From assembly GCF_964194025.1 (NCBI RefSeq), contig NC_134468.1:13640001-13704000 (forward strand): a DNA stretch of 64,000 nucleotides. Direction: 5' to 3'. Position numbers and translations under genes: made by a program. Under the pieces are notes generated by a model. That model was not told where the DNA came from. It searched no databases and saw nothing but the letters and a program-made list of their open reading frames with translations. Below, one piece after another: positions 12,033 through 38,251 of the stretch. Numbering within the stretch: the first letter of the stretch is position 1; each line of letters begins with the position of its first letter. The stretch is from Convolutriloba macropyga (Eukaryota).

Positions 12033-14605
12033 CTTAAATCAAAACAAACAATCTCATACCACCGTCTTATTTGCCAAATCCACCTCATTGTCCACAGCAC
12101 ACGGCTTTTATACAAAAAGAAAGGCTTACAGTCATTATTGCTCTAATAAAAAGTTAACCAGTCAAAAAAGCGTATATGATGGTTTCATTGATAAGCTTGT
12201 CTTTATTCTTGGCAAGTGTGTGTTTCAAAATCCATTTTTCGCAAACTACAAAGCCATAGTTCACAACAGGTACTGTGGTACAGCTTGATAATCTTTGCAC
12301 AATCTGTTTCAAGTATCAAAAATGTGCCAGAATTAACCACTTACAAAGCAAAAATAGCATTTGTACGGAATGAATAATTGCGCTTCAAATAATCTTAATG
12401 TCACTTTTTGAATACTTCAGCTCCTTATTTCGTGACGATTTTTAGCTTCTACAACAGCCATACAAATTTGACTTTTGTAATATGTTGCGTTGACGATTCT
12501 AGAGCATTTAATTCAGGCGCGTGCAAATATGGGAACAGTAATCCAATAACAAAAACGCTAATAAATAAAGAGAAGCAAATCCATTGTCCGATGTCAACAC
12601 CACAACGGAAATTGAAAACCGAAAAACTTGACAAGATCACAAAAATTTCATATAATTTTTAAAAAAAATTAGTATCAATCTCCTTAAGCCACAAAATATA
12701 CAGCTGAAAAACAAATAAAGCTGTGCGAGTGAAAATTTCGTGAAACAAGGACAAAAAGATAGGAAACAGACACACACAAAAACCAGGAACTAATAGTGGA
12801 GCCGCGTAGAATTCATTATCCTCAATAGCTCAAATAACACATCATTATCAACTGAATCTCAAATAGAATAGATCGTTCGTATCATTTAGTAGCCAATGGA
12901 ACTAATTAAACTCATTTGCTTTGAAAGTAGAAGTTTATAATCAAAAACAATTATTCTACAAATTGGCATCCGAAGGGATTAGGAGATAACCTTTAAAATA
13001 ATTCTTTCGCACTCTCATAAATTCTATCATGAAAACTTTCATGAATTCTTTTTACTAGCATACAGTCGTAGTTTGACGCCATGAAAAATATCTCCGTAAC
13101 GTGCTCGTCAAATCAAAAACCGCCTGAGTTACCGTTTCTTTACAGACAAAGTAGAAACACGGTATCATTTGCATAGAAATGAGTTAGTTGACTTCCAGCC
13201 GTTCGAATATGAGATGAACTGTAATGGCAACAAATAGCAGTTTCAAAGCAACGGTAGTAACGCTGAACCTTGTGGTACCTCGGTTTTGATTTCCTGCTCC
13301 GAAGACAAATCTTTAAACAAGACTCTCTCAGATCTACCACAGACAGCTTTCTAAGAAGCAGACAACACAGCCATCGAATTTTTTGCTGACATCTAGAATC
13401 CATAGAAGTATATTTTGATTAAGTGCATGGAAGGCTGCTGATAGGTCAAGCCGAATGTAAAAATTGCCTTTTTGTCCTAAATAAAGTAACGTCATTGATA
13501 ACTTTTAGAAGGGCTGTTTCGGTTGAAAGACACTTTCTACACAAGAATTTATTGCCATCAAGGTGCTCAGTGAGCGGTAAAAAAGCTGCTCTTTCTATTT
13601 AATGTGATATAAATTGATATTCGATACTGGTCTATAGTTTTCAAAATCCTCACAAACAGATTCACCTTTTTAATACCATAAACCGACACACGTTTACAAT
13701 AATTACTTCAAACTCTATTCGAGCGCAATTAATGAAGTCCCAGAGGGAAAATTCCCTGATCTAAAGAAGATCATATCAGTAAGTAGCTTCATATGATGTC
13801 ACTAGAGCTCATTAAAGAGATCTACATGATTTGAATCTACAAAATCAAACCAATTTTGGCCATCTTGAGTTCAGATGTAAAATTGTGAATTAGAGCAATT
13901 TAGATCCCGCTCAATTCGGACAGACAATGACGTAAAAGTCTAATGGTCCGACGAAAAACCAATCGAGCAAAAAATTGCATTAAAAAGACCAAGCGGAGCC
14001 AAATAATGAAACATGACCGACTAACGTCGGGCGAATTGCTCTCAAACGACCGGCGAGCGGTTGGCTTGGTCAGTAGCTAGCCACGGGGGGGGGGGGGGTG
14101 CACCGGGCACCGGGGGCTGATGGGGGCAGTACTGGGTGGGGGAGGGCAAAAGCGCGGTGGGGGGGGGGTGGAGCCAATAGTGGGGGTGGGGGTCAACAAA
14201 GGGGGGGGGGGGGTGTCAACCTCTAAGAACCGCCCCTCACACCATAAGTATAAGTATAAGTCTCCAAGACAGTTTGAGCTGAAACAAACCTGAAAGGCTC
14301 TAAGAGCACATAATGCCCGCTGGGCGCTACCTGTTTATCCCGTTTTTGAGGACGAAAAGTCAAAAGCGTCAGACGAAAAATTGGTCAAGCGAAAAATCGC
14401 ATAAAAAGACCTACAGGACTAATATAATTGCTACAAACTTCGTTTGAGAGCAATTAAAAATGATCAAAATAATATTTTGCATACGAAAAGACAAACACCA
14501 ACTCAATAATCTTGAAACGTTGTTCGAGAGACATCGATAATCCTTCACTATACGCAGGCGTAAGTTTCTAGCGCTCCTATCGGTGTCTATGTAATATATA
14601 CTAAC

Positions 14606-17033: not shown

Positions 17034-20000
17034 CTACCAAAATCAAATTAAAAAAATTACATTACATCAGTTAAATTTCAATTTTGACGAGATCTGTATA
17101 CATTAGGTAATTCATAAAAAGGCAAATGCAAAAACTACAAAAATAATTCCTGTATTATACAATATCAAATTGACTGATGTCGAAGTGGACGGAGTACTTA
17201 GCGCCTAGTAGTTAGTGCTTTTCTAACACCCTCGAAGCTTTCTCGTACATAACTGCCAACAACCCCTCAATTACCTTTCGTTATTTACAAAGCAGATTTC
17301 CGATTGAAGTCTTGTTTCTACTTTACTTAAGTTTTTTTTATATATTATAGTTTTCGTTCACTTGCATTTTGCTGACACGAACACTGCCATTTTGCTGACT
17401 GAGCAGGCCAAAACTAAAGATTATAGAGGATCACGGACCTAAGACAACGTAACTGCGAGGAAGAGCAGTTTTCCCCAACCGAAAACATAGCCGGCAGATT
17501 GCCGGAAAATAGCCGCGATAGACGCTCGTGGCCTTCCATGGAATTCAAACAACTAAAGAAACAAGACAGACAGATTGACCACCAGTCCTTTAATAGACCA
17601 CCAGATTCTTTGGGTTAGATTCGGACTGTCATTTTTATGAGACAAATACCCTCTATAAGGAAAAAGCCCTAGAAGAGCTTTTCCAAAATCAAGTGAGGTA
17701 AGTCACGCAATTGACCTAAAAGCAGAATATATGACGTCACGCACACAAAATTCTAACTCCAAGGCAGTAGAAGTAACTGAAATTGAAAAAGTCAATGGTC
17801 GCAAGAATCATTGCTGGAAGTCCTGAAATACAATCCAAAAAATTGAATGAAAAACTTAGAAATACTGTACTTGACCAGAACATCAGTTGAACAACGCCAG
17901 CCAAAAAGAGAAACAATCTCAAAAGTTTGAACTAAAATCAAACAAACTGAACAAAAATATATTCATTGTAAAACTGATGAACTCTTGGACTCCTGAAGGA
18001 CAAATTTGATCCAATTAACCCTTAAACCATTAACCCGAACACAAACCTCGAAAGGCCAATAAAGACAGCAAAAAATTTAGAACGACCAAGACCTAATGAC
18101 CCGAAAAAAAGTTTCATTGGTCCGTAACGATTCATAAATGACTAAAAAAATAACAAAAAATTTCAAAACAATTGCAATTTGTAATGAAAAGCTGCAAAAA
18201 TTTTAGATATTAGTTTCTTCAGAACCATTTCAATCTATCAAGGCTATTCAGTAGCTCAATTTCTAGCTTTCAAAAGTTGCACTCATAAAGATCGATAATT
18301 TAGAAACATGACAAAAATTTTGAACTGTTCAAAATTTATAAAAGAGATGCAAAAACTTGTGTGTGATATTCAAAAGTTGAAAACAATTCCATTGCCCCTA
18401 GCAACTACTAAAACAAACGAGAAAACCGCAGATGAGGTTAGCTGACCTCTCAGACAAGAAAAAGTGAATAAACGATAAACATTTTCAAAAAATTGGAAAC
18501 AAAAATTACAAGTTATCACAAACTAATAAAATTGGTGAATTCAAAATGTTGAAAACGATTTTATTACAAATAAAAACTATGAAGACACTTATTATCATAC
18601 CTTATAGGAAGTTTTCTGCCACACTGAGGCTGGAAACACTCCAAAATGACAACAATTTTACTTGCAAGCTTTCTCAAAAGGTTGCAAAAATTCGGGACAT
18701 TAAAATGTTGAAAATCAAAAAATGGAATGTTAAAATCAATTGGAAAGCTCAAAAAATGACAAAAAAGTTCAGAAAACTTTGGTATACTTCAACTTGATAA
18801 AAATTGCAAAAATTATCATCATTTTTCGTGATTGTTTACATTACCAAAAACATATTTGAAGAAATTGCCATAAAAAGTAATTATATCTTTTAGAAGACAT
18901 TTATCAACTTTGACAAACGACAATTCAAGAATAATCAAACAAAAACCTCGAAAATTAACAAAAAAACCTGAAAAAAATAGCGCCATTTTGGTCTCGAAAA
19001 CTCATATATGACATTTTAAGCTTGAATTACGGCCTTCCCAGTAGCTTCAACACTCTAAGCACTTGATGGACTATTAAACGCGGCTGAAACCTAATGCGAC
19101 TGGGTCTTACCTGTTTATCCAATTTTGAAAGATCAAAGTCATGACAAATGTGTGAAAGTGTTTAAAACATCTTATGAAAAAAAGAGAGCACCAATACAAT
19201 CTAATTCTTGGATTGTAAACAATGACGATGTCCCCAATATTCGTCGCTATCGCTTCGCGGCTATTAAAAAAAGAGTGAGGGTAAAAACAAAATACACATA
19301 ATTCGATTGTTTCTATAACGCCGCATGATCTAGTGAAGATCCTAATGCTATTAATAGATTCAAAACATCCAATTTCGCAATTGTACCCCAATTGTAATCA
19401 CATCCAGTATATTGATTAGTACAAAAAAATTGTTAAACATTTGAACGCACTTTTGCCTCTATTAGGTCAAACAGTACTTCTATTCATTAATCTTCAGAAA
19501 AACGGTCGCTAATTATTTGGCTATGAAAGACGACCAGGGGGAGGCAACAGTGGGAGGGGGGTTTGGAAACGAATCTAGAGTGACTAATTCCTTTTCGGAG
19601 TAACTCCGTGTGGTATTTCAACGGCATCGCAAATTACTTGATCATTGTCCTCAACTTGATATCAAGAATTTGGAAACGACTCCAAATTTGTCAACAGTAC
19701 AGAAAACAGAACCTGGAGAATGGGATATATTCGTTTGGTAATAATTGGAATACTAAACAAACGCGTACACTTGAAAACCCTCAAATCACCAGTTCCATGT
19801 TTCCAAGAAGTACAGCCGTTCGTACATACTATAGCTGGCGACTAAATCAACACTAAATTACAAGTCTGCTTGGCTCCATAATGATTGTAGTGTCTTGTTT
19901 TCCAAAAAACACAAGAGCTGTCTTTGCTATTTGCTATCTGAAATCGGCCTTTGTTACCAGTCAATTCCCCAAAAAAATTTACTCCTAAATTTTAAAAATT

Positions 20001-23000
20001 GAAAACGCAACAACTTGTCTGCGTATCAAAAAGGAAATGAACTAGGTTTTGTAGAATCAGAAGCTCTTATTCCCCAATAAAAGCAGTTGACAATCAACGA
20101 TCTGCAAATTTTCACAAAATAGGGAATAGAATAGGAAATGTGAGCTTTTAATTAAAACTGCCAGCTGTTTCCCCCAATAGAATTTCCCAGCTGCTCTGAA
20201 TAGGAGTATGTAGACCATATGGAGACCATAGTTTTCTACGGTGTTATCACTTAATGTTATATCTCAGTTTAATTTGCTTTGCTCTACAGTTTTTTTCTAT
20301 GCTATTGACTCTATGTTCAAAAATTACAAAATCTAACGATCTTCAGCCTTCAACAAAACTTCTTTGTCAACTTCTTCGGAAAACGTGAACTTCTTTGGTG
20401 AGATTTTTACCTGTTTCTCTCAATTAAAAATGCGACTGCTCATCCACCAAAAGGTTGCAAAAATTCGGGACATTAAAATGTTGAAAATCATTCCATTGCC
20501 ATTAAAAAGTATAGAGAAAACTATTATCAAACCCTCCAAGACGTTTTATGGCCCTTGAGGCTGGAAAGCTCAAAAAATGACAAAAAAGTTCCGAAAACTT
20601 TGGTATACTTCAAAACTTGATAAAAATTGCAAAAATTATCATCATTTTCGTGATTGTTTACATTACAAAAAAAACAGATTTGATGAAATTGCCGTAATTA
20701 TATCTTTCAGAAGACATTTATCAACTTTTACAAACAACAATTCAAGAATAATCAAACAAAAACCTCGAAAATTGACAAAAAAACGTGAAAAATTGCGCTA
20801 TTTTGGTCTCGAAAACTCATGAATGACCTTTTAAGCTTGAATTACGGCCTTCTCAGTAGCTTCAACACTCTAAGCACTTGATGGACTATTAAACGCGGCT
20901 GAAACCTAATGCGACTGGGTCTTACCTGTTTATCCAATTTTAAAGATCAAAGTCATGACAAATGCATGAAAATTTTTAAAACATCTTATGAAAAAAAGAG
21001 AGCACCAAAACAATCCAATTCCTGGATTGTAAAAAATGAGGATGTCCCCAAAATTCGTCGCTATCGCTTCGCGGCTATTAACAAAAGAGTGAGGGTGAAA
21101 ACAAAATATACATATTTCGGTTGTTTCTATAACGCCGCATGATCTACTCAAGATCCTAATGCTCTTAATAATTTCAAAACATCCAATTTCGCAATTGTAC
21201 TCCAATTGTGATCGCATCCAGTATATTGATTCGTAAAAATAAGTAATTGTTAAACATTTGAACGCACTTTTGCCTCTATTAGGTCAAACAGTACTTCTAT
21301 TCATTAATCTTCAGAAAAACGGTCGCTAATTATTTGGCTATGAAAGACGACCAGGGGGAGGCAACAGTGGGAGGGGGGTTTGGAAACGAATCTAGAGTGA
21401 CTATTTCCTTTTCGGAGTAACTCCGTGTGGTATTTCAACGGCATCGCAAATTACTTGATCATTGTCCTCAACTTGATATCAAGAATTTGGAAACGACTCC
21501 AAATTTGTCAACAGTACAGAAAACAGAACCTGGAGAATGGGATATATTCGTTTGGTAATAATTGGAATACTAAACAAACGCGTACACTTGAAAACCCTCA
21601 AATCACCAGTTCCATGTTTCCAAGAAGTACAGCCGTTCGTACATACTATAGCTGGCGACTAAATCAACACTAAATTACAAGTCTGCTTGGCTCCATAATG
21701 ATTGTAGTGTCTTGTTTTCCAAAAAACACAAGAGCTGTCTTTGCTATTTGCTATCTGAAATCGGCCTTTGTTACCAGTCAATTCCCCAAAAAATTAACTC
21801 CTAATTTTTAAAAATTGAAAACGCAACAACTTGTCTGCGTATCAAAAAGGAAATGAACTAGGTTTTGTAGAATCAGAAGCTCTTATTCCCCAATGAAAGC
21901 AGTTGACAATCAACGATCTGTAAATTTTCACAAAATAGGGAATAGAATAGGAAATGTGAGCTTTTAATTAAAACTGCCAGCTGTTTCCCCCAATAGAATT
22001 TCCCAGCTGCTCTGAATAGGAGTATGTAGACCATATGGAGACCATAGTTTTCTACGGTGTTATCACTTAATGTTATATCTCAGTTTAATTTGCTTTGCTC
22101 TACAGTTTTTTTCTATGCTATTGACTCTATGTTCAAAAATTACAAAATCTACTGATCTTCAGCCTTCAACAAAACTTCTTTGTCAACTTCTTCGGAAAAC
22201 GTGAACTTCTTTGGTGAGATTTTTACCTGTTTCTCTCAATTAAAAATGCCACTGCTCATCCACCAAAAGGTTGCAAAAATTCGGGACATTAAAATGTTGA
22301 AAATCATTCCATTGCCATTAAAAAGTATAGAGAAAACTATTATCAAACCCTCCAAGACGTTTTATGGCCCTTGAGGCTGGAAAGCTCAAAAAATGACAAA
22401 AAAGTTCCGAAAACTTTGGTATACTTCAAAACTTGATAAAAATTGCAAAAATTATCATCATTTTCGTGATTGTTTACATTACAAAAAAACAGATTTGATG
22501 AAATTGCCGTAATTATATCTTTCAGAAGACATTTATCAACTTTTACAAACAACAATTCAAGAATAATCAAACAAAAACCTCGAAAATTGACAAAAAAACG
22601 TGAAAAAAATAGCGCCATTTTGGTCTCGAAAACTCATATATGACATTTTAAGCTTGAATTACGGCCTTCCCAGTAGCTTCAACACTCTAAGCACTTGATG
22701 GACTATTAAACGCGGCTGAAACCTAATGCGACTGGGTCTAACCTGTTTATCCAATTTTAAAGATCAAAGTCATGACAAATGCATGAAAATTTTTAAAACA
22801 TCTTATGAAAAAAAGAGAGCACCAAAACAATCCAATTCCTGGATTGTAAAAAATGACGATGTCCCCATAATTCGTCGCTATCGCTTCGCGGCTATTAACA
22901 AAAGAGTGAGGGTGAAAACAAAATATACATATTTCGGTTGTTTCTATAACGCCGCATGATCTACTCAAGATCCTAATGCTCTTAATAATTTCAAAACATC

Positions 23001-23380
23001 CAATTTCGCAATTGTACTCCAATTGTGATCGCATCCAGTATTATTGATTCGTAAAAATAAGTAATTGTTAAACATTTGAACGCACTTTTGCCTCTATTAG
23101 GTCAAACAGTACTTCTATTCATTAATCTTCAGAAAAACGGTCGCTAATTATTTGGCTATGAAAGACGACCAGGGGGAGGCAACAGTGGGAGGGGGGTTTG
23201 GAAACGAATCTAGAGTGACTATTTCCTTTTCGGAGTAACTCCGTGTGGTATTTCAACGGCATCGCAAATTACTTGATCATTGTCCTCAACTTGATATCAA
23301 GAATTTGGAAACGACTCCAAATTTGTCAACAGAACAGAAAACAGAACCTGGAGAATGGGATATATTCGTTTGGTAATAAT

Positions 23381-23826
23381 TGTCAGCGGAGGCCTACCTA
23401 TACCCATGTGACGTTCACCTTTATGCCAGCTATCTATTAGAGCAATTTTGGGGGCGCTAACTATTTTGGTTTTCTCAGGCTTTTGTTTTAAAGATTTTAA
23501 GTCAGCATGCTCGAAAGAGTTCTTTTGGCAATTTTGAGTCTATCTCCAGAAATAAAAGTTTTGTGCAGCAAAAGTTTTATTCACAAGTCAACTGAGCTGT
23601 AGCTATCGTTCTCTCTGTTCTGAGAGTGGCAATTAGATTAGAGCATAACATTTGATGTTAAATATTTGCACGAGATAAAGTAAGAGCATTGTACAATTTA
23701 ATCTTTATAATCCCGGATGCTTATGCGCGTGTGAATGAGTTAAATTTACTAACAATGGGGTAAATGCACGCGCATGGATTGTACAAATATGTTTAAGCAT
23801 GGCACGAATGTATGAGGGGCATGACA
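23381..23826 (-). repeat. 3' LTR (446 bp)
   Basis: Matches 35902-36339 and lies next to the PPT. Confidence 0.95.
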
Positions 23827-23839
23827 CTCCCACTTCTTC
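23827..23839 (-). promoter_or_regulatory. Polypurine tract
   Basis: - strand GAAGAAGTGGGAG immediately before the 3' LTR TGTCA. Confidence 0.85.
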
Positions 23840-23882
23840 AGAAAAAAAAAATTAATGTCAAGTTTTCAATTTTCAGTTTTCA

Positions 23883-24975
23883 ATGTCTTCTGATCTTAAT
23901 TTATTCGCAATGAACTGTGATTCTGACGAGGCGCAGGCTGTCAGTTCTGTGTGCGAATCAGCATCCAGCGAGAAACACCAGAGAAATGTTGTCTGGGCGA
24001 GAGAGCTATGGAATTTTGTGTCAGCTGGAAGTGTGTCGTCTGTTCCAGAGGTGACCCGTGAGGAAATTGAGGGTCAGAGTATGAGTGTTGGCATTCTTCG
24101 CGGGGAGCCTCTGATGGAGTTCAGCAGCCCCGAGATGCAAGTAAGAATCTTGAAGTATGTGTAGAGGTAGTAATCGTGTCTTAGTTGTTGTTCACTGCAT
24201 GAATTGTGAATGCATGTTGTGCTGTTTGGTTTTTACAGCAGTTGGCAACGGGATTGAGGACGCCATTGGATTTCGAAGGACACTTCGCCAGCAACGAGAA
24301 GATCAGGCCAGATTGGGCTTTTCAGTCATGGGTGTGCGAGGGTGTGTATCCTCGTGACATCCTAAGTTACCACCCGAGGCCACATCGCACTGAAAACTTG
24401 TCCGGCTTCTTCAACTTCCGTGTGTTTGGGGGCGAACGTCTGTATGATCCTAGCCTGCTCATTGCAAACTCGTTCACGTACACAGGCCCTCATGTAGATT
24501 CTAAGCCCACGCTGACCACACTTGCTGTTCTCCTCTTTGGCGTGAAGCTCTGGATTATATGTCCAGACATCAAGACAGACACGGCAGCGTTCATTAGAGG
24601 GCTGGATTTGAAAGAAATGTGCAGCTTCCTCAAAGTAATTGCGCAATTAGTTCGGTTTTGACTGTTTTTTGTTCCTCTGCTGACACTATGGGAGCATAAT
24701 GCGGTTGATGTTCTTGATTGTCAAATGTCATGCTTGTTCAGGGGCCAGCAGGGAAAGGATTCAGATTCGTGATTCAACGGCCTGGTGACACGCTGTATCT
24801 GCAAGAGATGGTTGGGCACGCTGTCTTCACTGTCAATGGTCTCCCTGGCATCGACTGTGGGATCATTGAAGAGGGCTCGTGTCTGCTATCGTCACCAGTG
24901 GTCACGGATTTGTCTCCAGAGAGGTTGCACGGGTTAAGTTGGATCGTTGAACAACCCGGCACCCGCTGCTCGTAA
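23883..24975 (+). CDS. JmjC-domain 2OG/Fe(II) oxygenase, 3 exons (23883-24140, 24239-24634, 24742-24975), ~295 aa, antisense within the retroelement
   Basis: Phase-0 introns GTAAGA..TTTTACAG (98 nt) and GTAATT..GTTCAG (107 nt) join three ORFs in frame. Motifs TGPHVD, LLFGVKLWIICP and QRPGDTLYLQEMVGHAVFT. AATAAA at 25084. Confidence 0.85.
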
Positions 24976-25132
24976 GAGGAAGCAGAAGAAGAAGGCCCGG
25001 TTTGGAAGAAATCAGCGCCCAAAGAGTTAGCTCAATGACAAGTGGTATCAAATTTTACTGCACTTTTTTCCCAAATAGTAATGAATAAATAGCGAAAAAT
25101 TGAAAACTGAATAATACGAGAAATGCGGTAAT

Positions 25133-25925
25133 ACCCATATAGCAAAAAGCACAATGTTTACGGTTTGTATATTAAATTTGAGTTGCGTAGCTCAAATAAC
25201 AAGATGAGGCTTTTGTTTTTCGTATTTTAAGAAATTTTATAAATAGCACACAGTTCAGATAAAAGGTGAAATTAAACATAATATAGTGCACAGAAGCACG
25301 CGAAAGAGGGTATAAAGCACGAAGGTTGTTATGATCAATAACTGTGTTAAAAATTACAGCGCTGACTTTTATAGTTAAGCCAGGCTTTTGTTTTAAAATA
25401 CACTGTTTTTTTTTTGAATTAAGTTAAAAAAAAATAACACGAAATTAAACTTTTTGGTTCCTTCATGAAGTCCAATCAGCGCACAAAATTACGCATTTAA
25501 CACAAAGCAATAGCTGAGGAGTGTGTATAGAGAAAACGAGAGCTTTTGAACAAACGGCACTACCAGGCTTTTGTTTTAACTGCAGCAAACTTTATATAAA
25601 TATCACATTCAGAGGGTAATTGTATTCGATTAGAACATAAGTACTAAGCTTAGCCACTCATATGACGTGAGAAGGCACATGTAGGAGCTATGCTGAGATT
25701 TATAGAGAGATTGAGCCAATAGAGTTGTCAGGCTTTTGTATTAAAGAAGCATTAAAAATAAAGCAATGAATAAAACTTGTTCGTCAAATAAAACATAAAT
25801 TAATTAAAAAGTATTTGCGTTTAAGATTTTGTTTTACCCATGTGACATTAAGCACATAAACTCGGAGCTCCTGACAAAGAACGGTGGTTTTCTGTTGAGT
25901 AGTTTGGTCAGGCTTTGTTTTTTAA
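25133..25925 (+). repeat. Degenerate array, 5 units with ~175-bp period, two-part motif
   Basis: AGGCTTTTGTTTT-like box at 25207, 25382, 25565, 25730, 25910; ACNCATNTRAC-like box exactly 74 bp upstream at 25133, 25491, 25656, 25836. Confidence 0.7.
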
Positions 25926-26488
25926 CAATAACAAAATAGTGAAATTAAAAGCAAATCTTTTTTCAAATCATTGAAATATTTTTTATTTTAGAGCCAACAA
26001 CAAGCAGCACACAGCTTCTAGACGAGGGAAGCCGCAGCGAATAGCTGCAAGCAGAAGGGTGGGGAGAGGAGGGGGACAGGGGGGAGAAACGAAGCATCGT
26101 CATTAAGTTTTAGTAGGTATATCCACTTTATTTATACTTGAAAAATTTTCTGGTTATTAAATTGAGAAGTAGCACACATATTGAATCCGCGATAATCTAA
26201 CATATTTGTAGCAATTATTCGTGTCGGTAGTTTTGGTGGACGAATTGTAAAATAATTTTCATACAGCTCCAGAAATAAATGTATTTTTTTCCTGTTTTTT
26301 TTTTCAATTTATATGAGTATTTTTTTTTTCCTTTTCACAATTATATAATTAAATCTTTCAAGCCAAAATCTTTTATAATTGAGTATAGGACTGAGAGTAG
26401 CACAGGTATAATAAATTGTTTGTGAGTGAAAAACACCCAGAATCAAATCAGTAACTAATGGTTTATGAAGATTTTCAGATCTATAAAA

Positions 26489-26761
26489 ATGATGTCAAAG
26501 ATATTGTTTGTTGCATTATTTGCTATGATTGTTACGAGTGTTGATATTAACAAGTGCATTTTATTGAGCGAAGAGAACAATTTTGGGACAAATTTGAAGT
26601 GGTTGTGTTGTGATGGAGTACAATTTTTGAGCGAGGCTGGAAAAATTACAGCAAAAGCAGGGGCATGCGAAAATTCCCAAAATAAAGTGAAGCCTTCAGC
26701 TGGCAGCATGTTAATGATAGCCAGTTTTGCAATTGTGCTACAATTACAGTTGAGTCATTAA
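26489..26761 (+). CDS. Small predicted secreted, GPI-anchored protein (90 aa; ORF open from 26465)
   Basis: N-terminal hydrophobic signal MMSKILFVALFAMIVTS, 4 Cys, candidate omega site in CENS, polar spacer, hydrophobic C-terminus MLMIASFAIVLQLQL. Confidence 0.6.
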   Translation: MMSKILFVALFAMIVTSVDINKCILLSEENNFGTNLKWLCCDGVQFLSEAGKITAKAGACENSQNKVKPSAGSMLMIASFAIVLQLQLSH

Positions 26762-26940
26762 TATGAGAGTAGTAGGAAAGTGGTGAAGGAAAACAGTTTA
26801 ATGAGAGCAAGTAGATGGAGTTGAGTAAAGTGAACAAAACTAGAAAATTTCAAAAACAAAGAAACTTTTAGTTTTATTTACCATACGTTGAATCTGTAAA
26901 TGAATTAAAGTTAGGAGAAGATTGATCTATATATTTTTCA

Positions 26941-29242
26941 TTAAGCACGCGACTCATAAATCACTTGAGGATAAATGGGGGGCGGAACAATCGATTGCTC
27001 TGACTCTGGACAAGATGCAGATTGAGAATCCGCTGTATCAACAGTAGTTGTTGAAGGGCTAAAAAATGGATTTGGTAAATTTAAATCACGTCGTCGGAAA
27101 ATTAATCCCTTTTCGCGAACACGATGATTAGGGTGTTGTCGCAAGTAGTCATAATCTTCATCAGAAACTACCAAAATGGGCTGTGATTTAATAGTGTGGG
27201 CAGAAATAGTTAGGCGAAATGGGAAACGTCTATGAACTTGAATGTACCGGTGAAAAAGATAACTCATCAAAAAGTGTAGACCGAAAGACAAAATAAATGT
27301 AGTGATCGCAAACACTATATAAGGTGTCCAGTGCACCGTCTCATCGAATTTTGCTGTTATCTGAGGATGAAATTGTTTCATGCGATTAACAATAGGTTCA
27401 GTAACTTTTTCGAGTTCTTTATAATTACGTCTCTTATGCTCAGGAATGTGAATTAGTTGGAGATGAACCTCCTCTACTAATTGTACTCGAGCAATGTCAA
27501 CATCAGACATTTGTGGCATAGAATCAAGAGATGGAAGTTGATTGAATAAAAAGCTAAGCGGCGTTGGTAAATTAATGTCGAGTCTTAACTGGTGTTGTAT
27601 ACTGACAGGTAGACCAATCTGATCTTAAATGTATATTAGGTCCTTCTAATTCCTGTCCACACGCTAAAATAATAATGCAAACTTGGCACCCTTGTCTATG
27701 TTCTTTACTTAGGGGATGACTAGAATTCGGAGATCTAGACGAGAGCAGAAAGTTTGGCGTTGCACTAGTAATCAGCCATCTACCATGGCCTAACGATTGA
27801 GCCTTTTCTTTGATAGGTAATTGAATTGATCTGATGCTACAAACTTCGAGTGCGGATAGAGTGTCTTTAAAAAGCAAAGTAGCCAGACATGAGTCCTTCG
27901 ATTTTTCCATCGCAAAAGAAGAGAAACAAATTGAGTAAAGCTTAGAGCCTATACATTCTTGTAAGTCAAATTCAGTCAAAAGTGCAGCTTCACTTTGCGT
28001 GTCTGTTACTGCAATGTAAGGCGTTTCTAAAACCCAAATGGTTGCTCTTGTTGACTCTTTAGTTGGCATTGGAACTGGAAGAGCGTGAATTACATCTAAA
28101 GCTGTAGAACCTGATGAAAAAGGTATAGATAATGTTAACATAAGACCAAAGTCGACACTAACAACACTTGTAACAAGTCGTGTCTCATAGTAAGACATCA
28201 CATGTTCTATTGGAATGGAAAGTGTTAGTCGATCTCTGTTGTATTGAGTTTCTAGCAAAACTTGTTGTAAAATTCGAATAAAAATTTTGCGAGGTATAAG
28301 AGAAAGTGGCAGCATACCATCTGCAATGGCAGTAGTCGAGCTCAAAATATTCATTCTAAAAGCAAAAAGAGCAGATCTATATGTGCGCAGATTGGTGTAT
28401 ACAGACGTTAAAATAGAGTTCAACAGGCCAATGTGGTGATTGAATTCTTCACGGATATAAAGAAATTGGTCACAATTTCGCATGTAGTTAATGCTGCTAG
28501 CCAATGTGTCAAACTGTGTCTGTAAAATTTTAACATTAGATCTCTGGATTTCAGCTAGATGTTCTGTGGCTTTACGCAGGTCTCGGAGTTCCTTTCCTAC
28601 TATAAAAAATTTCTCGTTCGTGGCGTTTTGGACACTAGACCATTCTTGCTGTAATTGGTTCATGTGGTTGATTGAGTCTACAATAGCTTTTCTATTCTGC
28701 TTACCAATCTGATTGCATCCGCCAAACATTCGTCCTAATGTACAGGATAGTTTGTCTTTGAATCCCATGCCCAGACCAAAGATTCCAGCTGCAGCGCCTG
28801 CTAACAGGGCAACGGGAATGCCTCTTCGTTCTCGATATTGATGCTCTGTAACTTTTGAGGGGAACAGCTCTGTGAGTTCTTGCTGAAGTTTCACCAAGTC
28901 GTTTTCGGCTCTTTCTTTCTCTGCAATGACTTCGGTAAGAACCCATTGTGAATTGAAGTTGGTGGCAGTGATGTTACTGTAGTCAAGTTGGCATCCCTTG
29001 TTGGGGTGATTCCAGATTGTGTCCATTCTTTGTGCGATTTCAGAGATAAATTTATCAATTGTTAGGTCAAAATTTGGAAAAGGCAAAACAAATTGAATCT
29101 GTTCAAATTTTTCAGCCAATAGTATTTTTCGATGGTAATTAAAAACAATGCCATTATGTTCTGAGTTTCCTGCTATCAGAAAAGGAAAGATTATTAATTG
29201 AACAAGCGAAATTGAATACAAGTTGTAACCAAAGTTGGCCAT
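26941..29242 (-). pseudogene. env: env, class I fusion glycoprotein (baculovirus-F/errantivirus-like), one frameshift near 27584
   Basis: Signal peptide, furin site RERR|GIPVALLAGAAAGIFGLG fusion peptide, heptad region, Cys-rich region, TM WTPYIVFAITTFILSFGLHFLMSYLF. The shifted frame LDINLPTPL.. aligns with the second env. Confidence 0.9.
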
Positions 29243-29509
29243 TCTTTAGTTAAAATTTGTTTTCTTAAGTTCGCCAATTGTTAGTACTGCTCAATTCGAC
29301 TGATTTTTGGATAAATGATCTAAATATGTGAATATTTTGGTTTGTATTCTGAGTGTGTTGAACTTTATAAGAAAAGGTTATGTTTGAACTGACGGGAGTG
29401 ATATCCAAAGTTTAGTCAAATTAACTTTTATCAAATGTTACTAGATTTGTTTGCTGTTTCAGTGGAGCACAGGAAGGACATAGTTTGCCTACTTAGATAA
29501 TCTAAACAA

Positions 29510-32500
29510 TTAGTTTGCGAATCGGTCAGAGTTCGATGAGCTGGCTTGATAGCGTTTTGGTACGTTCACCTCTCGGCGAAGTTCATATGCCCTGTTAGTT
29601 CCAACGCGTGGATCTTGATCTGGTGGAACTAATGAGCGGCGCCTTCTTTTTGATTTATTTGGCGGATCCAAAGGAACCGCTTGTGAAAACACGCTGGTCG
29701 GTTGAGTAGTGGCCCGTGTAACGTAATTTGGATAGTGTCGGGTATCAATGAATTCGGCACTCTGAGTAGTTGGTTGGAAGTGTTGGTTTCCTTCTACCAC
29801 AAATTGCTCCGCAGTATTTTTATACTCTTCGTGACAAAAACCTGGCCTGTTTTCCTGGTTTTGGGTCTGTAGGGGTCGCAAAATGGGCTGCTCATCATCT
29901 GATTGTTGTAATATGGGGTCTGAATTTCGTCCATCAGCAACTAAATTTGTGTTATTATCATTTTCACGTCGGTTTATATTTAATTGCAGTTCCGGATTAT
30001 TTGCAAAGTGTGTTGGAGCATTAAAACGTGATCTCACACCAAATTGCATAATTGAGGAACCATTAGATGGTCCCACTATGATTGGCGAGTGGTGGGAGGC
30101 TAGATCTTTTAGGGTTTGGTCAAAAATTTGAGGTTCAGAGATTATTTTTGTGATTGGGTCGGCTTTAAAAATTTTGGAGTCAATCTCTTTCAAATCTTCA
30201 AACTCGTATTTTGGTTGAATTGGACGCAAACCAATACGATGTACGAGTTGTGTATCGTTGGTATTAACTTTGCGAACTATATAATTTGAATTTGTTAAAA
30301 CTTGCTCAACGCGATAGAGCGGTAACCATTTGGTTACTGATTTAGCAGCAAAGTCTTTTGTACTACTTATTTTTGGGTTCATTAATAGGCAGTACGAATA
30401 CAATGCTAGAGGTTTTGAAAGAGCTTTTTTGTCATAGAAACGACGATATTTGTTGTATGCAACTATGGAATTATCCCTAGCACCAGCAAAGAGCGTGTTC
30501 ATACGGTCTTGACTTTGTTGTAAAAAGTCTTGAGTTGGTTGCGCTTTTTTGACAGTTAAATTATTGAATCGCAAGTCAAGGGGCTTTGTCGGCTGACGGC
30601 CATGAAAGAGCAGGGTCGGGGGGCATCCTATTGAAGAATTATAAGTGGTGTTATAGACAGAAGCTGCGATATCAACATAATGGTGCCAGTCTTTTACAAT
30701 TATATCTTCGTAAATATGCAAAAATCGTTTTACTATAGCATGGCTACGTTCAACTGCACCAATTGTTTGAGGATGTTTTACAGATGCCAATTTTAGTTCA
30801 ACTTCTAGCAATTCACATAAAGTTTTCATCATCTTTGACGTGAAAACTGAGCCCAAATCACAAAATGGTTGATGGAAGGTATGCGTGCTGCATAAAAATT
30901 TGAAGCAAAAATCTGGCAACGTTTTCCGCCGAGGCATTTTTCATTGGGATTAGAAAAAGATAACGGCTGAAGATATCCATCGCAGAGAGTATGTGTATAA
31001 CCTCCGGAGGGATTAAGTTTGCCTACAATATCTACTTCCATCAAATCTCCCGGAAAACATTGTTCTGATGCAATTGGTAAAAGAGGTGTTTTTAGGCTGT
31101 TTTGCTGAACTGATTTGATTTGCAAACAAGATGAACAATTGGACACATACTCTAAAAGAGTTTCTGTAAATTCAAGAAAGTAAAACCTCTGGCGAAACTG
31201 GTTTGCAGTTTCGGCTGTTCCAATGTGTCCCATAAATTTGCTATTGTGAATTCTAAACAGAATCTCATGACGAAGGTGCTTAGGAAGAACCAACTGACGT
31301 ATAAAATTCTGTCCGGTGTTATCGAAAAATTTGCGATATAACACATTATCATACAATTCCAATCGGTTCAATTGTTTATTATATTTTTGCAATTCGGTAT
31401 TAGAGTAAGTTGTAACTGGTTTCACTTTTCTCTTGATCCAATTGATCACAGTTCTAATATTGCCATCTTTTTGTTGCTCCTCAAAAAGATTCAGGGACTG
31501 GTTGTTATTGCTGAGATCAAACTCATCTAAGGGGTTAGCTTCTGCGAGTGAATTTAAGGGGAAGTCAAAAGAAGGCTCAAACACTTCAATCATATCAGAA
31601 TCTGGTTCCTCTAAATAGCACTGTAAAGCTGTAAGACTATTGTCTGGAATTTTTGGTCGGAATTCGACAGCAACGTCTATAAGTTGAATTCTGGTTTCCA
31701 ATTTTAGTTGGAGCTTTGTAGCAGGATTAATATAGATCCTAGACAAATAATCTGCGGCTACGTTAGCTTTACCTGGGACATGCCCCAAAACAAAATTGAA
31801 ATTAAGGACATGATCAACTGCATTCCATAAGGCAGTTGGAATTGTCTTTGCCTGGAAAAAACTAGTCAAACTTTTGTTGTCAGTCAACACTAAGATAGGT
31901 TTTTTAGTCCCCCATAAGATGTGCGCAAAATTATCAAAAGCAAAAGGAACTCCCAGAAACTCTTTTGCATAAACTGATAATTTAAGTTGCGTTGTATTAA
32001 AGATTTTAGAACCAAAAGCCACGGGAGCGTATTGCTTCTGTTCTAGTCCTTCCTGGTTCAGTACATAGTCCTCTACCATAAGGACGTATCCTGCGGAATA
32101 ATAGCTTGCGTCGGACAAAATTACATATTGTAGATCTGTTTTTGGTTGGCGAAGGGTTATTTTACAAGCATTGTTTAGCATTTCTATTAGTTCACTCATC
32201 GATTTTCGGTGCTCATCCGTAATTTCAAAATTGTTGTTACATTTTAGTAGTTTGTAAAATGGGAGCAGTCTCTCACTGAGGTTCGGTAAATAGGTCCTAA
32301 AGTATTGAAATAAACCAACAAGTCTTTTGACTTGCTTGAAGTTTTTTGGCATTTTGAGATTTGATAAAAATTTATCTATTTTGGCCTTTATGGGAGATGT
32401 CCCTTCCGATGAAATTGTTCTACCTAAAAGTGTGATCTCGGGGACACCAATTTCACATTTTCCCATTGATAACTTAAGTCCTGAATTTCTAATACACGTA

Positions 32501-33890
32501 AAGATAGCTTTCAAATTTCCGTAAAGACACTGAAAATCAATTGCGCCTGTTCCCAAATCATCCACGTACTGGAAACATTGGTCATTAGCTATACATGAAT
32601 CAAGGTACTTTCTCATGAAAGAGCTGAAGGCACTGACTGATCTACTTAGTCCCTGTGCTAACCTAGTGTACGCAAAGGTTCGGGAGGCAAAATTGAAGGC
32701 TAATAACTGGACAGATAATGGGTCAGACATCTTAACCGCATAATACGCCGGACTACAATCTAGTTTTGCGAAAATTCGTTTGCCCGCTAAATGTGCTCCG
32801 ACATCTTCTATAGTTGAAATCGGGAAATTGTTAGAGTTGTAGTCATGGCGTATTAAGTGATTAATACGCCTAAGGTCAACTAATAGTCGGAGTTTTCCGG
32901 ACGGTTTGCGTTGCGCAAAAAGAGGGCTCGAGTATTTGGAATAGGGCAGTGTAGTGATGATTCCAAAATACTGCATTATAGCTAAATCAATTAGGATTTC
33001 CTCGCGCAAGTGAATTGCAGTGGGTGGGCTCTGAGTATACACTGGTCGCTGTGTTTCAGGTGTGAGCTTAATCTTAAACTGGTCATTTCCACCGACATCA
33101 TAATTGTGCCGCGCAAAGACATCATGAAAAGAAACTAAAAGTTCTTCAAAGTAGGCGTTAAAATTGTAAGTCGAGCAACTACTGCTCCCTTTGGTACTGA
33201 AACTACATTTGGGGTTACATTTAAGAAAGCTATTGGCGTTTTTGAAGATTGGATTTTTGAAAAGGAGCTGGTTAAACAAAGACCTGTTGATCTTTCAAAA
33301 CGTGGGTTAGGATCTACAATTCCAATTGTGTTGTCGGCTAAAATATTGTCGAGAAAACAATCTATTGTTTCCTGACTATTGGGGAAAATGTTCAATTTTT
33401 TGATTGTTTTGAGAACGTATTTATGTTTTTTTAAATTTCTTTTTCGTTTTGCCATTACGCATTGTCATTTCTGAAATTTGCAGCGATATTTCAGGCAGGT
33501 GTAGTTTTTGATGCTACGTCAATTAGAATTCTATTGTTTTTATAGAATGGAAGACCTAAAATTGGGTTATTCATTTTCGGCAACAACAAAAACTTTTCTG
33601 TGAATACTTGATTAGCGAGAGTGAAGGTGATTTCAACTTGACCTAGGGTTTTTGCATGGGTTGCGTTTGCCACTTTTACAACGGGAAAGGGGTTTGTATC
33701 AAGATATTTAATACTCTGCGGTGCAGAAGATTTAATTTTCAAGCATGGACGGTGTAAGAGCACTAGAGAAAGCACCAGAGTCCACTAAAAACTTTAAGGA
33801 AAGTGATTTAAACGTTAGGGGAACAAAAAACAGATTTGAGGAAAAAGGAGGCATAACAGCAGTTAGAAAAGGGGGTTGCAAATGTGGCTG
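29510..33890 (-). pseudogene. pol: pol (protease, RT, RNase H, integrase) with frameshifts and an internal deletion
   Basis: FLVDSGA protease motif (~33785); RT LRLLVDLRRINH, AQGL, YVDD; RH SDAS..ELL-like..TDNKSL; IN HHCC (H..H..CSSC), DIVG, DLGSVFTS, ERSH. Confidence 0.95.
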
Positions 33891-33892
33891 AC

Positions 33893-35781
33893 CTAGTTTT
33901 TTTGCTGATCAAATGGCAGTTGCTGATTTCTTTCAGGTTGAGGTTTGGACCAGCAGTACTGCACTGTGTGTCCATACTTTCCACAATTGCGGCAGTATCT
34001 CTGGTTTCTGGTGGGCATTGTATTTGACCAGTGTCCTGCGTATGCTGTTGGATAGCCTGATGCTGGGTAACCTTGTGCTTGCACACCCGCTTCATCAGTT
34101 GTCGCTGACTGTTGGCCGTGGGACTGATAGCCATAAGCCTGGTAGACTGGCTGCTGTTGTCCTGTTGTTATATAGCCCATTTCCACCGACATCATAATTG
34201 TGCCGCGCAAAGACATCATGAAAAGAAACTAAAAGTTCTTCAATTTGTTCCTTTTCTTGTTCAGTTAAAATTGAATTGTCCCACCGAAATTTTGAAAGAA
34301 ATTTTTTCCTAGACTCAGAATCTTTTGTTGGATCAAGCTTTTCTTGTTCTTTCAAAAATTTGAGTGTCTCAAATATTCTTTTGTGAATACCGGTTAATGC
34401 ATCTGGGTCCTCACAATTTTCAGGTGTAGGAAACCAAAAGCAGTCTGTTGGAAATGGTAAACTTTGCTGGGAATTGTCAACAAGCTCGTTTATGTCGCTG
34501 CCATCTATATTTAAGAGCGCTGGGTCAATTGGTTGTAAATACTTTGCTTGCTTAGGCGTTAAAATTGTAAGTCGAGCAACTGGACGGTGTAAGAGCACTA
34601 GAGAAAGCACCAGAGTCCACTAAAAACTTTAAGGAAAGTGATTTAAACGTTAGGGGAACAAAAAACAGATTTGAGGAAAAAGGAGGCATAACAGCAGTTA
34701 GAAAAGGGGGTTGCAAATGTGGCTGACCTAGTTTTTTTGCTGATCAAATGGCAGTTGCTGATTTCTTTCAGGTTGAGGTTTGGACCAGCAGTACTGCACT
34801 GTGTGTCCATACTTTCCACATTTGCGGCAGTATCTCTTTCAAATTTTGACTTTTATATAGCCCGGTCTTTGAGAGCTGATTGCATTGTGACTCTGATTAT
34901 TTTGACGCCAGTCTCTTTGTTGGAAAGGTTGTTGCATCTGCCAGTTTTTGTTAAACTGGTAGGGCGGATTAAACCGCTGTCTTGGGTAAAACCCACCTCT
35001 GCCTCGATAGAAATGGTGCGGCTGTCTAAAATTACTATAAGGAGCATTAGAGTTTGCATTTTGACTTTTATGCTCTTCCAGTGACTTCGCTAATTTGTTT
35101 GTTGTTTCTTTCAGCTCTGTTTGATTTTTATTTAAGGCACTCATACTCTGAATAAGTGAGGTCATTTGTGAGGCTGAGATTTCGCTAAATGCTGTTCCGA
35201 CATCATCTTCAGGGTATTGCTCTTCAAGCATCGCCCTTCTAGAAGCCCGTTCACAAGTCTTCTACAGTGGTGTGGTCAGGAAGAGTTAGTAGGTACTTTT
35301 TAAGCTTATTTGGCAAACCATTAATAAAGTTCTCCTTAACTCTTCTGACTCGCTCATTAGAACGATCTTCAGCAGCAACTGCTGGCACGCCAGCAGCGGC
35401 AGCTCGCGCAGCAATATTTGGAAAAGCAAGACTAGCTAAGCGTTGCAACTCTGTCAAAAAATCATGAATGCTTTCCTCTGATTGCTTCAGTTTTCTATTT
35501 TGGAATTGGAGTTTATAAAGTTCAATTCTATCAGGGTTTACATACCGGTTTCTCAATGCGTCTAGTGCTTGATCCAAGTCTTCACGTATGGCTTCTGTAA
35601 GCTGGTCATAAAAAACTAAGGCATTACCTTTAAGATGAAGATGCAAGTAGCGATGTTGTTGATCCTCGTCGATTGCTGCCAATCCAATGCAACTTCGAAG
35701 TTGTCGTTCAAATTGAGTAAAATTATCTTTCTCTGATCCCGAAAAGGGCGTCAAATTGAGAAAAGGTTGCAACTGAGCCAT
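33893..35781 (-). pseudogene. gag: gag (Ty3-type capsid + CCHC knuckle), frameshifted and internally rearranged
   Basis: LTPFSGSEKDNFTQFERQL..LKGNALVFYDQL capsid; knuckle CR[K/N]CGKYGHTVQYC present twice (~34790-34832 and ~33955-33997), each followed by an AAAAAAC slippery heptamer and TAG. Confidence 0.9.
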
Positions 35782-35887
35782 AGTTTACAACAAGAGATTG
35801 CAGAGTTTTACGATTTAGTTGTCATTTCCAATGGGAGTCATATTTAGTTTTAAGAGAAAAAATCTCTTGACTCAAACTTGCCAAAAA

Positions 35888-35901
35888 CACTCCTGTCACC
35901 A
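35888..35901 (-). promoter_or_regulatory. Primer-binding site, tRNA-Leu-like
   Basis: TGGTGACAGGAGTG directly after the 5' LTR; one mismatch to the complement of the recalled tRNA-Leu(CAG) 3' end (TGGTGTCAGGAGTG). Confidence 0.85.
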
Positions 35902-36339
35902 TGTCAGCGGAGGTGACAGCGGAGGTTCTCCTTTATGCCAGCTATCTATTAGAGCAATTTTGGGGGCGCTAACTATTTTGGTTTTCTCAGGCTTTTGTTT
36001 TAAAGATTTTAAGTCAGGATGCTCGAAAGAGTTCTTTTGGCAATTTTGAGTCTATCTCCAGAAATAAAAGTTTTGTGCAGCAAATGTTTTATTCACAAGT
36101 CAACTGAGCTGTAGCTATCGTTCTCTCTGTTCTGAGAGTGGCAATTAGATTAGAGAACAACATTTGATGTTAAATATTTGCACGAGATAAAGTCAGAGCA
36201 TTGTACAATTTAATCTTTATAATCCCGGATGTTTATGGGCGTGTGAATGAGTTACACTTTACTAACAATGGGGTAAATGCACGCGCATGGATTGTACAAA
36301 TATGTTTAAGCATGGCACGAATGTATGAGGGGCATGACA
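35902..36339 (-). repeat. 5' LTR (438 bp)
   Basis: Matches 23381-23826 and is followed on the - strand by the PBS. Confidence 0.95.
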
Positions 36340-38251
36340 ATAATTGGAATACTAAACAAACGTGTACACTTGAAAACCCTCAAATCACCAGTTCCATGTT
36401 TCCAAGAAGTACAGCCGCTCGTACATACTATAGCTGGCGACTAAATCAACACTAAATTAAAAGTCTGCATGGCTCCATAACGATTGTAGTGTCTTGTTTT
36501 CCAAGAAACACAAGAGCTGTCTTTGCTATTTGCTATCTCAAATCGGCCTTTGTTACCAGTCAATTCCCCAAAAAATTAACTCCTAATTTTTAAAAATTGA
36601 AAACGCAATAACTTGTCTGCGAATCAAAAAGGAAATGAACTTGGTTTTGTAGAATCAGAAGCTCTTATTCCCAATAAAAGCAGTTGACAATCAACGATCT
36701 GTAAATTTTCACAAAATAGGGAATAGAATAGGAAAGGTGAGCTTTTAATTAAAACTGCCAGCTGTTTCCCCCAATAGAATTTCCCAGCTGCTCTGAATAG
36801 GAGTATGTAGACCATATGGAGAGCATAGTTTTCTACGGTGTTATCACTTAATGTTACATCTCAGTTTAGTTTGCTTTGCTCTACAGTTTTTTTCTATGCT
36901 ATTGACTCTATGTTCAAAAATTACAAAATCTAATGATCTTCAACCTTCAACAAAACTTCTTTGTCAACTTCCTTGGAAAATGTTAACTTCTTTGGTGAGA
37001 TTTTTACCTGTTTCTCTCAATTAAATATGCAACTGCTCATCCATCATCTGTTCTGTTAGAGAATGCACCAATCCCTTACCTTTTTAGAAACAAATTTTAC
37101 CAAGTTCTATTTTAAATTATAAATTGTTGAAAAACACTCCAAAAATTCTCTCTGGAATTGAGATTGTCTTGGTGTCATGGAAACCAGAATCAAATGCGTG
37201 TTCATTGGAAAAAAACAATTACAGAAACAGACAACACAATCGTACACAATAACATATATTTCGCACTCCTACGCAGCGCAATTATCGGTCTCAGAGGCTG
37301 CCGTGTTACTAAACGTGTAGCTGAGGTTTATATTACATAGTTTTGTTGTGTGGGAGGGGAGGCTAGACAGCTAATTAGTAAAGTAACATTTCAACCTTTT
37401 GATGCGGCTCCTGTAGTCAATCACACTAACATTTCGCTTAAGTTTAAAATACAATGTGCTTTTGCGGTAAATTCAAATACGCCGCTGTGATGTTTCTTAT
37501 TGGTGGCTAACTCTTTTGTCTATTGTAGTGGATCTGACACTTTTGCAGTAACCTCTTGTCAGTAGACCGATGGAAATTTGCAATCATCTTCATGATATCA
37601 CTTACATAACATAAAATCTATAGGATAAGGTTGGAACTGTATAAATCAGTTTACATTTTCAGCAAGAACTGAAAAAACTTTTCAACAATTGATTCAGTTT
37701 ATATAGTTTTTCATAAAATCCATATATATAAAATTTTGTATATATAATTTTAAACTTGTAATATTTAACCCCTGGGTTATATTTTCAATTTACTTGTTTA
37801 AACAAAAAAATAATAACCACTTTTGTATCTCGCTGCAAAAAACATCGGACAAACATTTAGGAAGGGTTGGAAGAAGCTACACATGCTGGTCTAGGATTAT
37901 TACCATCCGCGGGTCTCTAGAACCCTAAAACTCCATGAATTGCCTTTCACACCGCGAACGTAGATCTCCGCAGCAGTTTTAGTGAATCGCATACTTATAT
38001 TAGTAAGGCTCTAGAGAACTGCCCGGCGACCTAATGCCCTCGGGTGTTATCAGTTTATCCTGTCTCTCAAGTTCTGTTCAGTTGAAGGTTTCTGATCTTT
38101 AGGCATCCGCCTCTGTCGATCAGCTCTTTCGTCGGAGGGTCATTTCCCTGTCAAATTGACGTTTTAAACTTAATACAACTTTGCTTCAGAGCACAACAAG
38201 AACCGAGGAAGGCAAAAGCTACATTCTTAAGTACATTTTATATAGAATTAC

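Follow-up and report, generated by a model that had tools for sequence, protein, structure and literature searches.

The 64,000-nucleotide stretch of the Convolutriloba macropyga genome analysed here (positions 13,640,001 to 13,704,000 of contig NC_134468.1, assembly GCF_964194025.1; hereafter the window, numbered from its first letter) contains no N and carries, at 23381-36339, a Ty3/gypsy-type long terminal repeat (LTR) retrotransposon whose sense strand is the minus strand. On the strand opposite to its gag-pol genes, between a third open reading frame (ORF3) and the 3' LTR, lies a gene of three exons with its ATG 57 nt from the LTR. An original prediction, made from the sequence without database searches, had presented this antisense gene as a spliced JmjC oxygenase with intact catalytic residues, encoded by the element and possibly countering silencing. 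We find that it is very probably a genuine protein-coding gene, spliced as judged by conservation and maintained by selection, which a Ty3/gypsy-type clade carries as an accessory gene in an animal host; an oxygenase identity for its product is a tentative reading of a small set of conserved residues.

The antisense gene and the retroelement that carries it

The gene is read from the plus strand of the window.

23883..25030, plus strand: antisense accessory gene, three exons, with one frame-changing deletion in exon 3 of the window copy

Exon 1 (23883-24140, 86 codons, ATG at 23883) is followed by intron 1 (24141-24238, GTAAGA...TTACAG), exon 2 (24239-24634, 132 codons), intron 2 (24635-24741, GTAATT...GTTCAG) and an exon 3 that in the window copy extends from 24742 to a stop at 24973-24975 (77 codons). 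Both introns are bounded by GT and AG and lie in phase 0, and the three exons occupy three different frames, giving a model of 295 aa for the window copy. The three exons and two introns had been predicted with exact coordinates, and the ATG and all four splice sites are identical across the window and four paralogous copies described below. The predicted length of about 295 aa is likewise true of the window copy, but the end of its exon 3 is not native, being the product of the frame-changing deletion: the long-form stop of the paralogues corresponds to window 25028-25030, and the intact long form has 86+132+118 codons, a native product of ~336 aa. In this intact product a conserved core is preceded by an N-terminus that is acidic, rich in Ser and variable, and followed by a basic C-terminal tail, ending in a basic run resembling a nuclear localisation signal (NLS) and then F-G-R, an arrangement kept between the window's lineage and the divergent loci L006 and L009 introduced below.

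As predicted, the exons are GC-richer than their surroundings (50-54% vs 37-41%), the introns having 37-40% GC and gag, pol and ORF3 38-41%; at third codon positions the exons have a GC fraction (GC3) of 0.51-0.60 vs 0.32-0.36 in gag, pol and ORF3. The GC content of the antisense gene is 50-57% in the window and in L004, L006, L008 and L010, and lies above that of the element's sense genes in most lineages, L007 with 44% being the exception. Host exons, of which few were sampled, have 38-44% GC, lower than the antisense gene.

The position of the gene inside an LTR retroelement, in antisense, had also been predicted correctly, LTRs being present at 23381-23826 and 35902-36339 with reverse transcriptase (RT), RNase H and integrase on the minus strand between them. 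The parts of the element, with the signals proposed for the antisense gene, are the following.

23376..23380: target-site duplication, left (ATAAT), at the end of the left flank; a single ATAAT stands in the empty site of the neighbouring repeat unit
23381..23826, minus strand: 3' LTR (TGTCA...TGACA); homology with the four paralogous copies begins at 23381
23706-23710, plus strand: TATAA-like candidate promoter site in the 3' LTR, by reading
23827..23839, minus strand: polypurine tract, a 13-nt purine-rich run on the minus strand directly before the LTR's TG, by reading
25031..26940: AT-rich spacer of 1.9 kb between the antisense gene and ORF3, 32% GC, with no long ORF
25084..25089, plus strand: AATAAA, candidate polyadenylation signal, the first on the plus strand after the long-form stop
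26941..29242, minus strand: ORF3 of the element, 766 aa where whole, as in the paralogous copy L003 (12785-15085, minus strand)
29510..35781, minus strand: gag-pol region by Pfam domains (Retrotrans_gag; protease, RT, RNase H, integrase zinc finger and core, in Ty3/gypsy order)
35888..35901, minus strand: primer-binding site, starting with TGG directly after the 5' LTR, by reading
35902..36339, minus strand: 5' LTR, paired with 23381-23826
36340..36344: target-site duplication, right (ATAAT), at the start of the right flank

The two LTRs are direct repeats of ~440 bp, start with TGTCA, end with TGACA and are 97.4% identical over 418 nt. With the TG...CA pairing of their ends, the 5-bp target-site duplication, the primer-binding site and the polypurine tract all present, the structure is that of an LTR retrotransposon, and the Pfam domains succeed one another as gag, protease, RVT_1, RT_RNaseH, Integrase_H2C2 and rve, the order of a Ty3/gypsy element; the Asp_protease match is weak and lies at the N-terminus of the 1410-aa pol of L002. 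Read along the minus strand, the element consists of the 5' LTR, primer-binding site, gag, pol, ORF3, AT-rich spacer, plus-strand antisense gene, purine tract and 3' LTR, the purine tract sitting in the 56-nt spacer that separates the 3' LTR from the ATG of the antisense gene. On the plus strand AATAAA is absent from 23551 to 25084, and the hexamer is no rarer than chance in the window, so its position is simply consistent with a polyadenylation signal.

Some features of the element stand apart from the question of the antisense gene. At the end adjoining the primer-binding site the two LTRs are wholly unlike over ~20-29 nt (23381-23410 / 35902-35921), and there is a short local duplication in the 5' LTR. 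ORF3 has no Pfam family and no PDB match; it is conserved better than pol (55-61% identity, five lineages) and may or may not be env-like.

Copies, lineages and selection

The near-identical set of copies was defined from the raw ORF of exon 2, which led to five proteins, a cluster with 93% identity, from long contigs in the ENA assembly ERZ25071359. One of the five loci, L005, is the window's own locus in that assembly (99.95% identity, same flanks), and the other four, L001-L004, are insertions at other sites with 96-98% identity to the window element. The antisense gene has thus been carried along with the element to new sites. L002-L004 carry the full layout; all that is left of the element in L001 is an LTR, the antisense gene and a further ~0.5 kb. 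In profile searches with exons 2 and 3 the further matches were exon-sized unnamed ORFs only, and the divergent loci are L006 and L009 in ERZ25071359, L007, L008 and L010 in a second assembly, ERZ25074608, and one short contig from an SRA run. The exon 2 search, made against 1.84 billion representatives, returned only exon-sized ORFs from the same kind of element and a bacterial PKD protein (P0009), whose match was rejected as spurious.

At the divergent loci integrase, RNase H and RT lie downstream on the opposite strand wherever the contig is long enough, and the layout is common to the four paralogous copies and four divergent lineages (L006, L007, L008 and L010) from the two assemblies. 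Indeed, in every copy and lineage examined the coding region is antisense to gag-pol and stands between pol and the 3' LTR. Identity of the divergent lineages to the window is 49-58% in pol, 55-61% in ORF3 and 32-45% in the antisense gene, which indicates that the gene is older than the split of the lineages and evolves faster than pol. No counterpart of exon 1 was found in the divergent lineages by tblastn.

The exon structure is conserved over the same range. In L006, L007 and L010 the equivalent of exon 3 follows that of exon 2 after ~60-110 nt, in a different frame and behind a pyrimidine-rich stretch and a phase-0 AG acceptor at the same codon as in the window (the donor of L010 reads GTAAGT). 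Relatives at ~35% identity therefore have intron 2 in common. Intron 1 may be common to L006 also, as suggested by an acceptor-like stretch directly before the aligned start of the L006 ORFs. Among the near-identical copies there are no indels in exons 1 and 2, and indels do occur in intron 1.

Selection was assessed by counting codon changes in each exon, unjoined, over five independent near-identical copies, a change carried by at least two copies being taken as inherited and a singleton as arising after insertion. The inherited changes are 11 synonymous to 3 non-synonymous and the singletons 6 to 27, one stop included (Fisher's exact p = 1.6e-4 for the contrast; chance expectation ~22% synonymous). 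Between lineages synonymous divergence (dS) is saturated, non-synonymous divergence (dN) is 0.2-0.9, and dN/dS is 0.22-0.36 where computable. The antisense gene was under purifying selection while the lineage transposed, and it decays neutrally after insertion, in dead copies. Neutral decay of the frame across copies, which the original prediction had named as evidence that would speak against it, is thus confined to dead copies and does not characterise the active lineage.

All 336 codons are open in three of the five independent copies (L002, L003 and L004), while L001 has one premature stop and one frame-changing indel in the antisense gene. The window copy and L005 represent a single locus in two independent assemblies; compared with any of the four paralogues, both show a single frame-changing deletion in exon 3. 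The window copy is a decayed one, and its 295-aa product is without the basic NLS-like tail. Its sense genes have also suffered: compared with the longest paralogue ORF its pol has 7 frame-changing indels and its ORF3 has 1, and the gag-pol region contains one internal duplication. Across the window and L002-L004, pol has 18 frame-changing indels vs 1 new stop, an odd ratio under neutral decay; part of these indels may be homopolymer-length errors of long-read assembly.

Several considerations weigh against a selected, spliced gene. The selection counts are small (47 changes), and promoter, splicing and polyadenylation are proposed from sequence and conservation only. By nucleotide, the exons of the young copies are no more conserved than the introns, which is to be expected because decay after insertion is neutral, and which adds no support. 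The alternatives fare considerably worse. That the exons are chance ORFs, or the fragment of a host gene riding as a passenger in one copy, is favoured by nothing apart from the absence of database relatives and is refuted by the distribution: no copy or lineage examined lacks the gene, and between them they cover different sites and two assemblies; no host homologue of it was found among the 1.84 billion representatives either, and we regard the probability of this explanation as negligible. Antisense non-coding transcripts occur in other retroelements (PMC7264820), and the coding capacity could be incidental to a transcript that acts as RNA, for example by forming double-stranded RNA with the genomic transcript and so regulating the element. 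We consider this very improbable in view of the synonymous excess among inherited changes and the low dN/dS across lineages, of the open frames kept in three exons that lie in three frames, and of amino-acid motifs conserved while synonymous sites are saturated. A protein-coding accessory gene remains by far the best account of the locus.

The surroundings of the copies and of the window element are recorded here as separate observations. The window element was inserted into a tandem array of 1,817-bp units that occupies 18846-23380 and resumes at 36340-37043, ~2.9 units with 96.6-100% identity between them, and it sits inside one unit; the units carry small ORFs of 77-95 aa. Further along the window, 142-nt direct repeats (99% identical; 38608-38749 and 41859-42000, 3,251 nt apart) flank two adjoining plus-strand ORFs (39350-40177 and 40178-41650) of 275 and 490 aa, which have no convincing family match and may belong to another mobile element. 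A tRNA gene scan of the 64-kb window gave no match and an Rfam scan of it was likewise blank; a sigma-70 promoter and terminator scan of the window stayed at chance level and is irrelevant to a eukaryote. Host genes near the copies encode a myosin head and ODF2 in the first assembly, and Drosha-like, Copine and zf-MYND proteins in the second, and point to an animal; neither the window nor the other contigs resemble human sequence. A copia-type element (gag, integrase, RVT_2) occupies L001:16168-20280 on the plus strand, ~5 kb past the truncated retroelement copy. At L007 (1-4343 on the minus and 5075-8302 on the plus strand) a Drosha-like frame of at least 1,983 aa without introns adjoins LINE-like ORFs (endonuclease, RT), beside the retroelement copy. 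L006 has three exon 2-like pieces on one strand (7438-7785, 10082-10429 and 12903-13253), 2.6-2.8 kb apart, and only the last has an exon 3-like piece after it, an arrangement that resembles a local tandem duplication of the element's LTR-proximal end; one of the three pieces has a single substitution in a splice signal.

Conserved residues and the oxygenase question

The residues on which the original prediction had founded its enzyme, T168, H171, D173, K189 and H244, are all present in the window model, the first four as T82, H85, D87 and K103 of exon 2 and the last as H26 of exon 3. To call the catalytic residues intact is accurate for the residues themselves, but the copy that bears them has lost its C-terminal tail and the pol of its element is broken. 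What matters more is their fate across the family. An alignment of exon 2 (10 sequences) shows conservation of Y37, N53, L68, D70, L74, P84, H85, D87, A96, L98, G101, W105 and T115, with P-H-x-D, a G and a W invariant. K103, placed 16 residues after D87, is kept in nine of the ten sequences and is Gln in the P0006 cluster. In exon 3 one His is found in 10/10 sequences, a single decayed copy having lost it; T, G, L and L are conserved as well, and Q-R-P-G-[DE] is kept wherever that stretch is covered. One reference containing a stop was excluded. The H-x-D...H pattern of a metal triad is thus conserved, the agreement being one of pattern only; together with the Lys and P-G-[DE] it lends genuine support to a metal-binding site like that of 2-oxoglutarate oxygenases.

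Because H-x-D, a near-invariant Lys, Q-R-P-G-[DE] and an invariant His are conserved together, the leading reading of the core is that it may be a very divergent Fe(II)/2-oxoglutarate oxygenase of cupin/JmjC type, a reading we find plausible but would stop short of calling probable. The following results weigh against it. Library searches were run exon by exon, on separate exons, for the window and for the family members. Pfam at E <= 10 returned no JmjC, no Cupin_8 and no other family for any window exon or any member of the exon 2 and exon 3 alignments, and NCBIfam was blank for the exons. In the PDB, exons 2 and 3 as phmmer queries and the family profiles A2 and A5 as hmmsearch queries, again at E <= 10, gave chance matches only, and KDM2A, JMJD6 and FIH, all with solved structures, were not among the chains returned. 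These matches, ribose-5-phosphate isomerase (E = 0.17) and hydroxyglutarate synthase (E = 1.4), were rejected as chance. Nothing relevant came from translated searches of plasmids. In the L006, L007 and L008 lineages Arg replaces T82, so that the Thr proposed to contact 2-oxoglutarate is not conserved, and the Lys is replaced in one cluster, as noted above. AlphaFold2 gave unusable models for exon 2 alone (9-sequence alignment, mean pLDDT 37) and for the long form of exon 3 alone (10 sequences, pLDDT 43); the L006 translation was left out of both fold alignments and was included in one Pfam scan (alignment A3) and in dN/dS.

Membership of the JmjC family, as claimed by the original prediction, accordingly finds no match in Pfam, NCBIfam or the PDB, and its narrower claim, that the protein belongs to the KDM2/KDM7/JMJD6-like group, is rejected: these subgroups are well sampled, a member should be detectable from exon 2 alone, and exon 2 has no match. 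The proposal in full, an element-encoded histone demethylase or protein hydroxylase of that group which counters silencing, can draw on the conserved H-x-D...H, Lys and Q-R-P-G-[DE], and the NLS-like tail and purifying selection are compatible with a nuclear enzyme. Given that no JmjC, Cupin_8 or related family appears in any exon of any member, that no JmjC chain in the PDB is reached by sequence or by profile, and that the Thr is not conserved, we judge it improbable, and its histone demethylation and anti-silencing role are speculation. A more serious competitor is a non-catalytic nuclear regulator, comparable with the antisense proteins of deltaretroviruses or with gene23 of maize Grande, which would bind nucleic acid or host factors and in which the His and Asp would be structural or would bind a structural metal. 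The basic tail, the fast evolution relative to pol and the failure of every search to find an enzyme family all suit such a protein, and the plant antisense ORFs also match no enzyme, one of them being nuclear (PMC7264820, PMC11963269). Against it, the only invariant histidines form H-x-D...H with Lys and P-G-[DE] between them, a specific pattern that would be an odd coincidence in a purely structural protein. We regard a regulator of this kind as a real possibility, albeit a doubtful one, and retain the divergent oxygenase as the leading reading of the core.

A mechanism can be outlined on the basis of the element's layout. Antisense transcription would start within the 3' LTR or at its border and read inward, the promoter being placed there because the ATG is only 57 nt away, and the transcript would be polyadenylated after the candidate AATAAA at 25084-25089. 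The introns would persist by being reverse-complemented on the genomic RNA and so invisible to the spliceosome. That introns antisense to the genomic RNA survive reverse transcription is established logic, as in antisense-intron indicator cassettes; the original prediction had used this standard argument, and it fits the data. The basic tail would direct the product into the nucleus, where it may serve the element in trans. The 5' copy of this LTR would likewise drive transcription outward, into the adjoining DNA. The complete sequence of events, in which the clade encodes a divergent JmjC-type oxygenase from a spliced antisense message of the 3' LTR, imports it into the nucleus and benefits from its action on chromatin or a host factor, is unlikely to be right in every part.

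Comparison with known systems

Plant LTR retrotransposons and deltaretroviruses are known to carry conserved antisense accessory genes, whose functions are almost entirely unknown. Plant Ty3/gypsy elements have a recognised class of ORFs that lie antisense between pol and the 3' LTR, comprising gene23 of Grande, from maize and nuclear, and the ORFs of RIRE2 from rice and of Retand from Silene, the last with TRP28 (PMC7264820, PMC11963269). The gene described here agrees with these in position and orientation and, like them, is conserved throughout a clade, in its copies and lineages alike; for both, a role in the nucleus or connected with DNA is suspected. The likeness is one of architecture and not of descent, the present gene being without TRP28 (PF04195) or any Pfam match. 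The host here is an animal and not a plant, the protein of the animal element has an oxygenase-like His/Asp/His pattern, and its gene has introns, which are not reported for the plant ORFs (PMC7264820, PMC11963269). No antisense accessory gene of an animal LTR retrotransposon, and none with introns, is described in the sources searched, and an intron-bearing antisense gene in an animal LTR retrotransposon was not found in the literature searched, a limited library that does not amount to proof. The clade offers a clean case, combining selection for the element's benefit with a shared intron that shows how an antisense gene keeps its introns through reverse transcription.

The plant antisense ORFs have been likened to the antisense genes of deltaretroviruses, which have a 3' LTR promoter (PMC7264820, PMC11963269). 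The present element resembles deltaretroviruses in having an antisense accessory gene adjoining the 3' LTR, a promoter being suggested here by position only. In deltaretroviruses the antisense message is spliced. Those are retroviruses, whereas this is a Ty3/gypsy-type element, and the likeness drawn here is one of layout.

Animal LTR elements are already known to acquire lineage-specific extra genes. Those of bdelloid rotifers have captured enzymatic ORF3s, a GDSL esterase and a DEDDy exonuclease (PMC5408684). The rotifer genes lie downstream of pol, are typically expressed from spliced messages of the element and belong to recognisable families, whereas the gene described here is antisense, has introns of its own and belongs to no detectable family.

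JmjC and Cupin_8 oxygenases have H-x-D, Lys, P-G-[DE] and the distal His in the same succession and at roughly similar distances, a likeness judged by eye that serves as a lead only. A JmjC protein encoded by a transposable element was likewise not found in the same limited library, again not proof; were the JmjC-type reading true, this would be the first such enzyme encoded by a transposable element in the literature searched. The short set of invariant residues yields a biochemical hypothesis that can be tested, namely binding of a metal and 2-oxoglutarate.

A further parallel is found in orchids. Ty3/gypsy elements of Phalaenopsis have fixed an ORF for an AlkB-type 2-oxoglutarate oxygenase, active as a demethylase in vitro and thought to counter host surveillance, and the account mentions neither antisense orientation nor introns (PMC9289625). 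In both cases an additional ORF has been fixed in an LTR lineage, but the orchid domain is recognisable and no oxygenase family is detectable here, and a Lys placed between H-x-D and the distal His speaks for the JmjC/cupin type over AlkB. If the oxygenase reading is false, the clade still provides a new family of nuclear retroelement accessory proteins; if it is true, the gene and the orchid AlkB would together be evidence for the recruitment of oxygenases by retroelements, perhaps to counter surveillance by the host.

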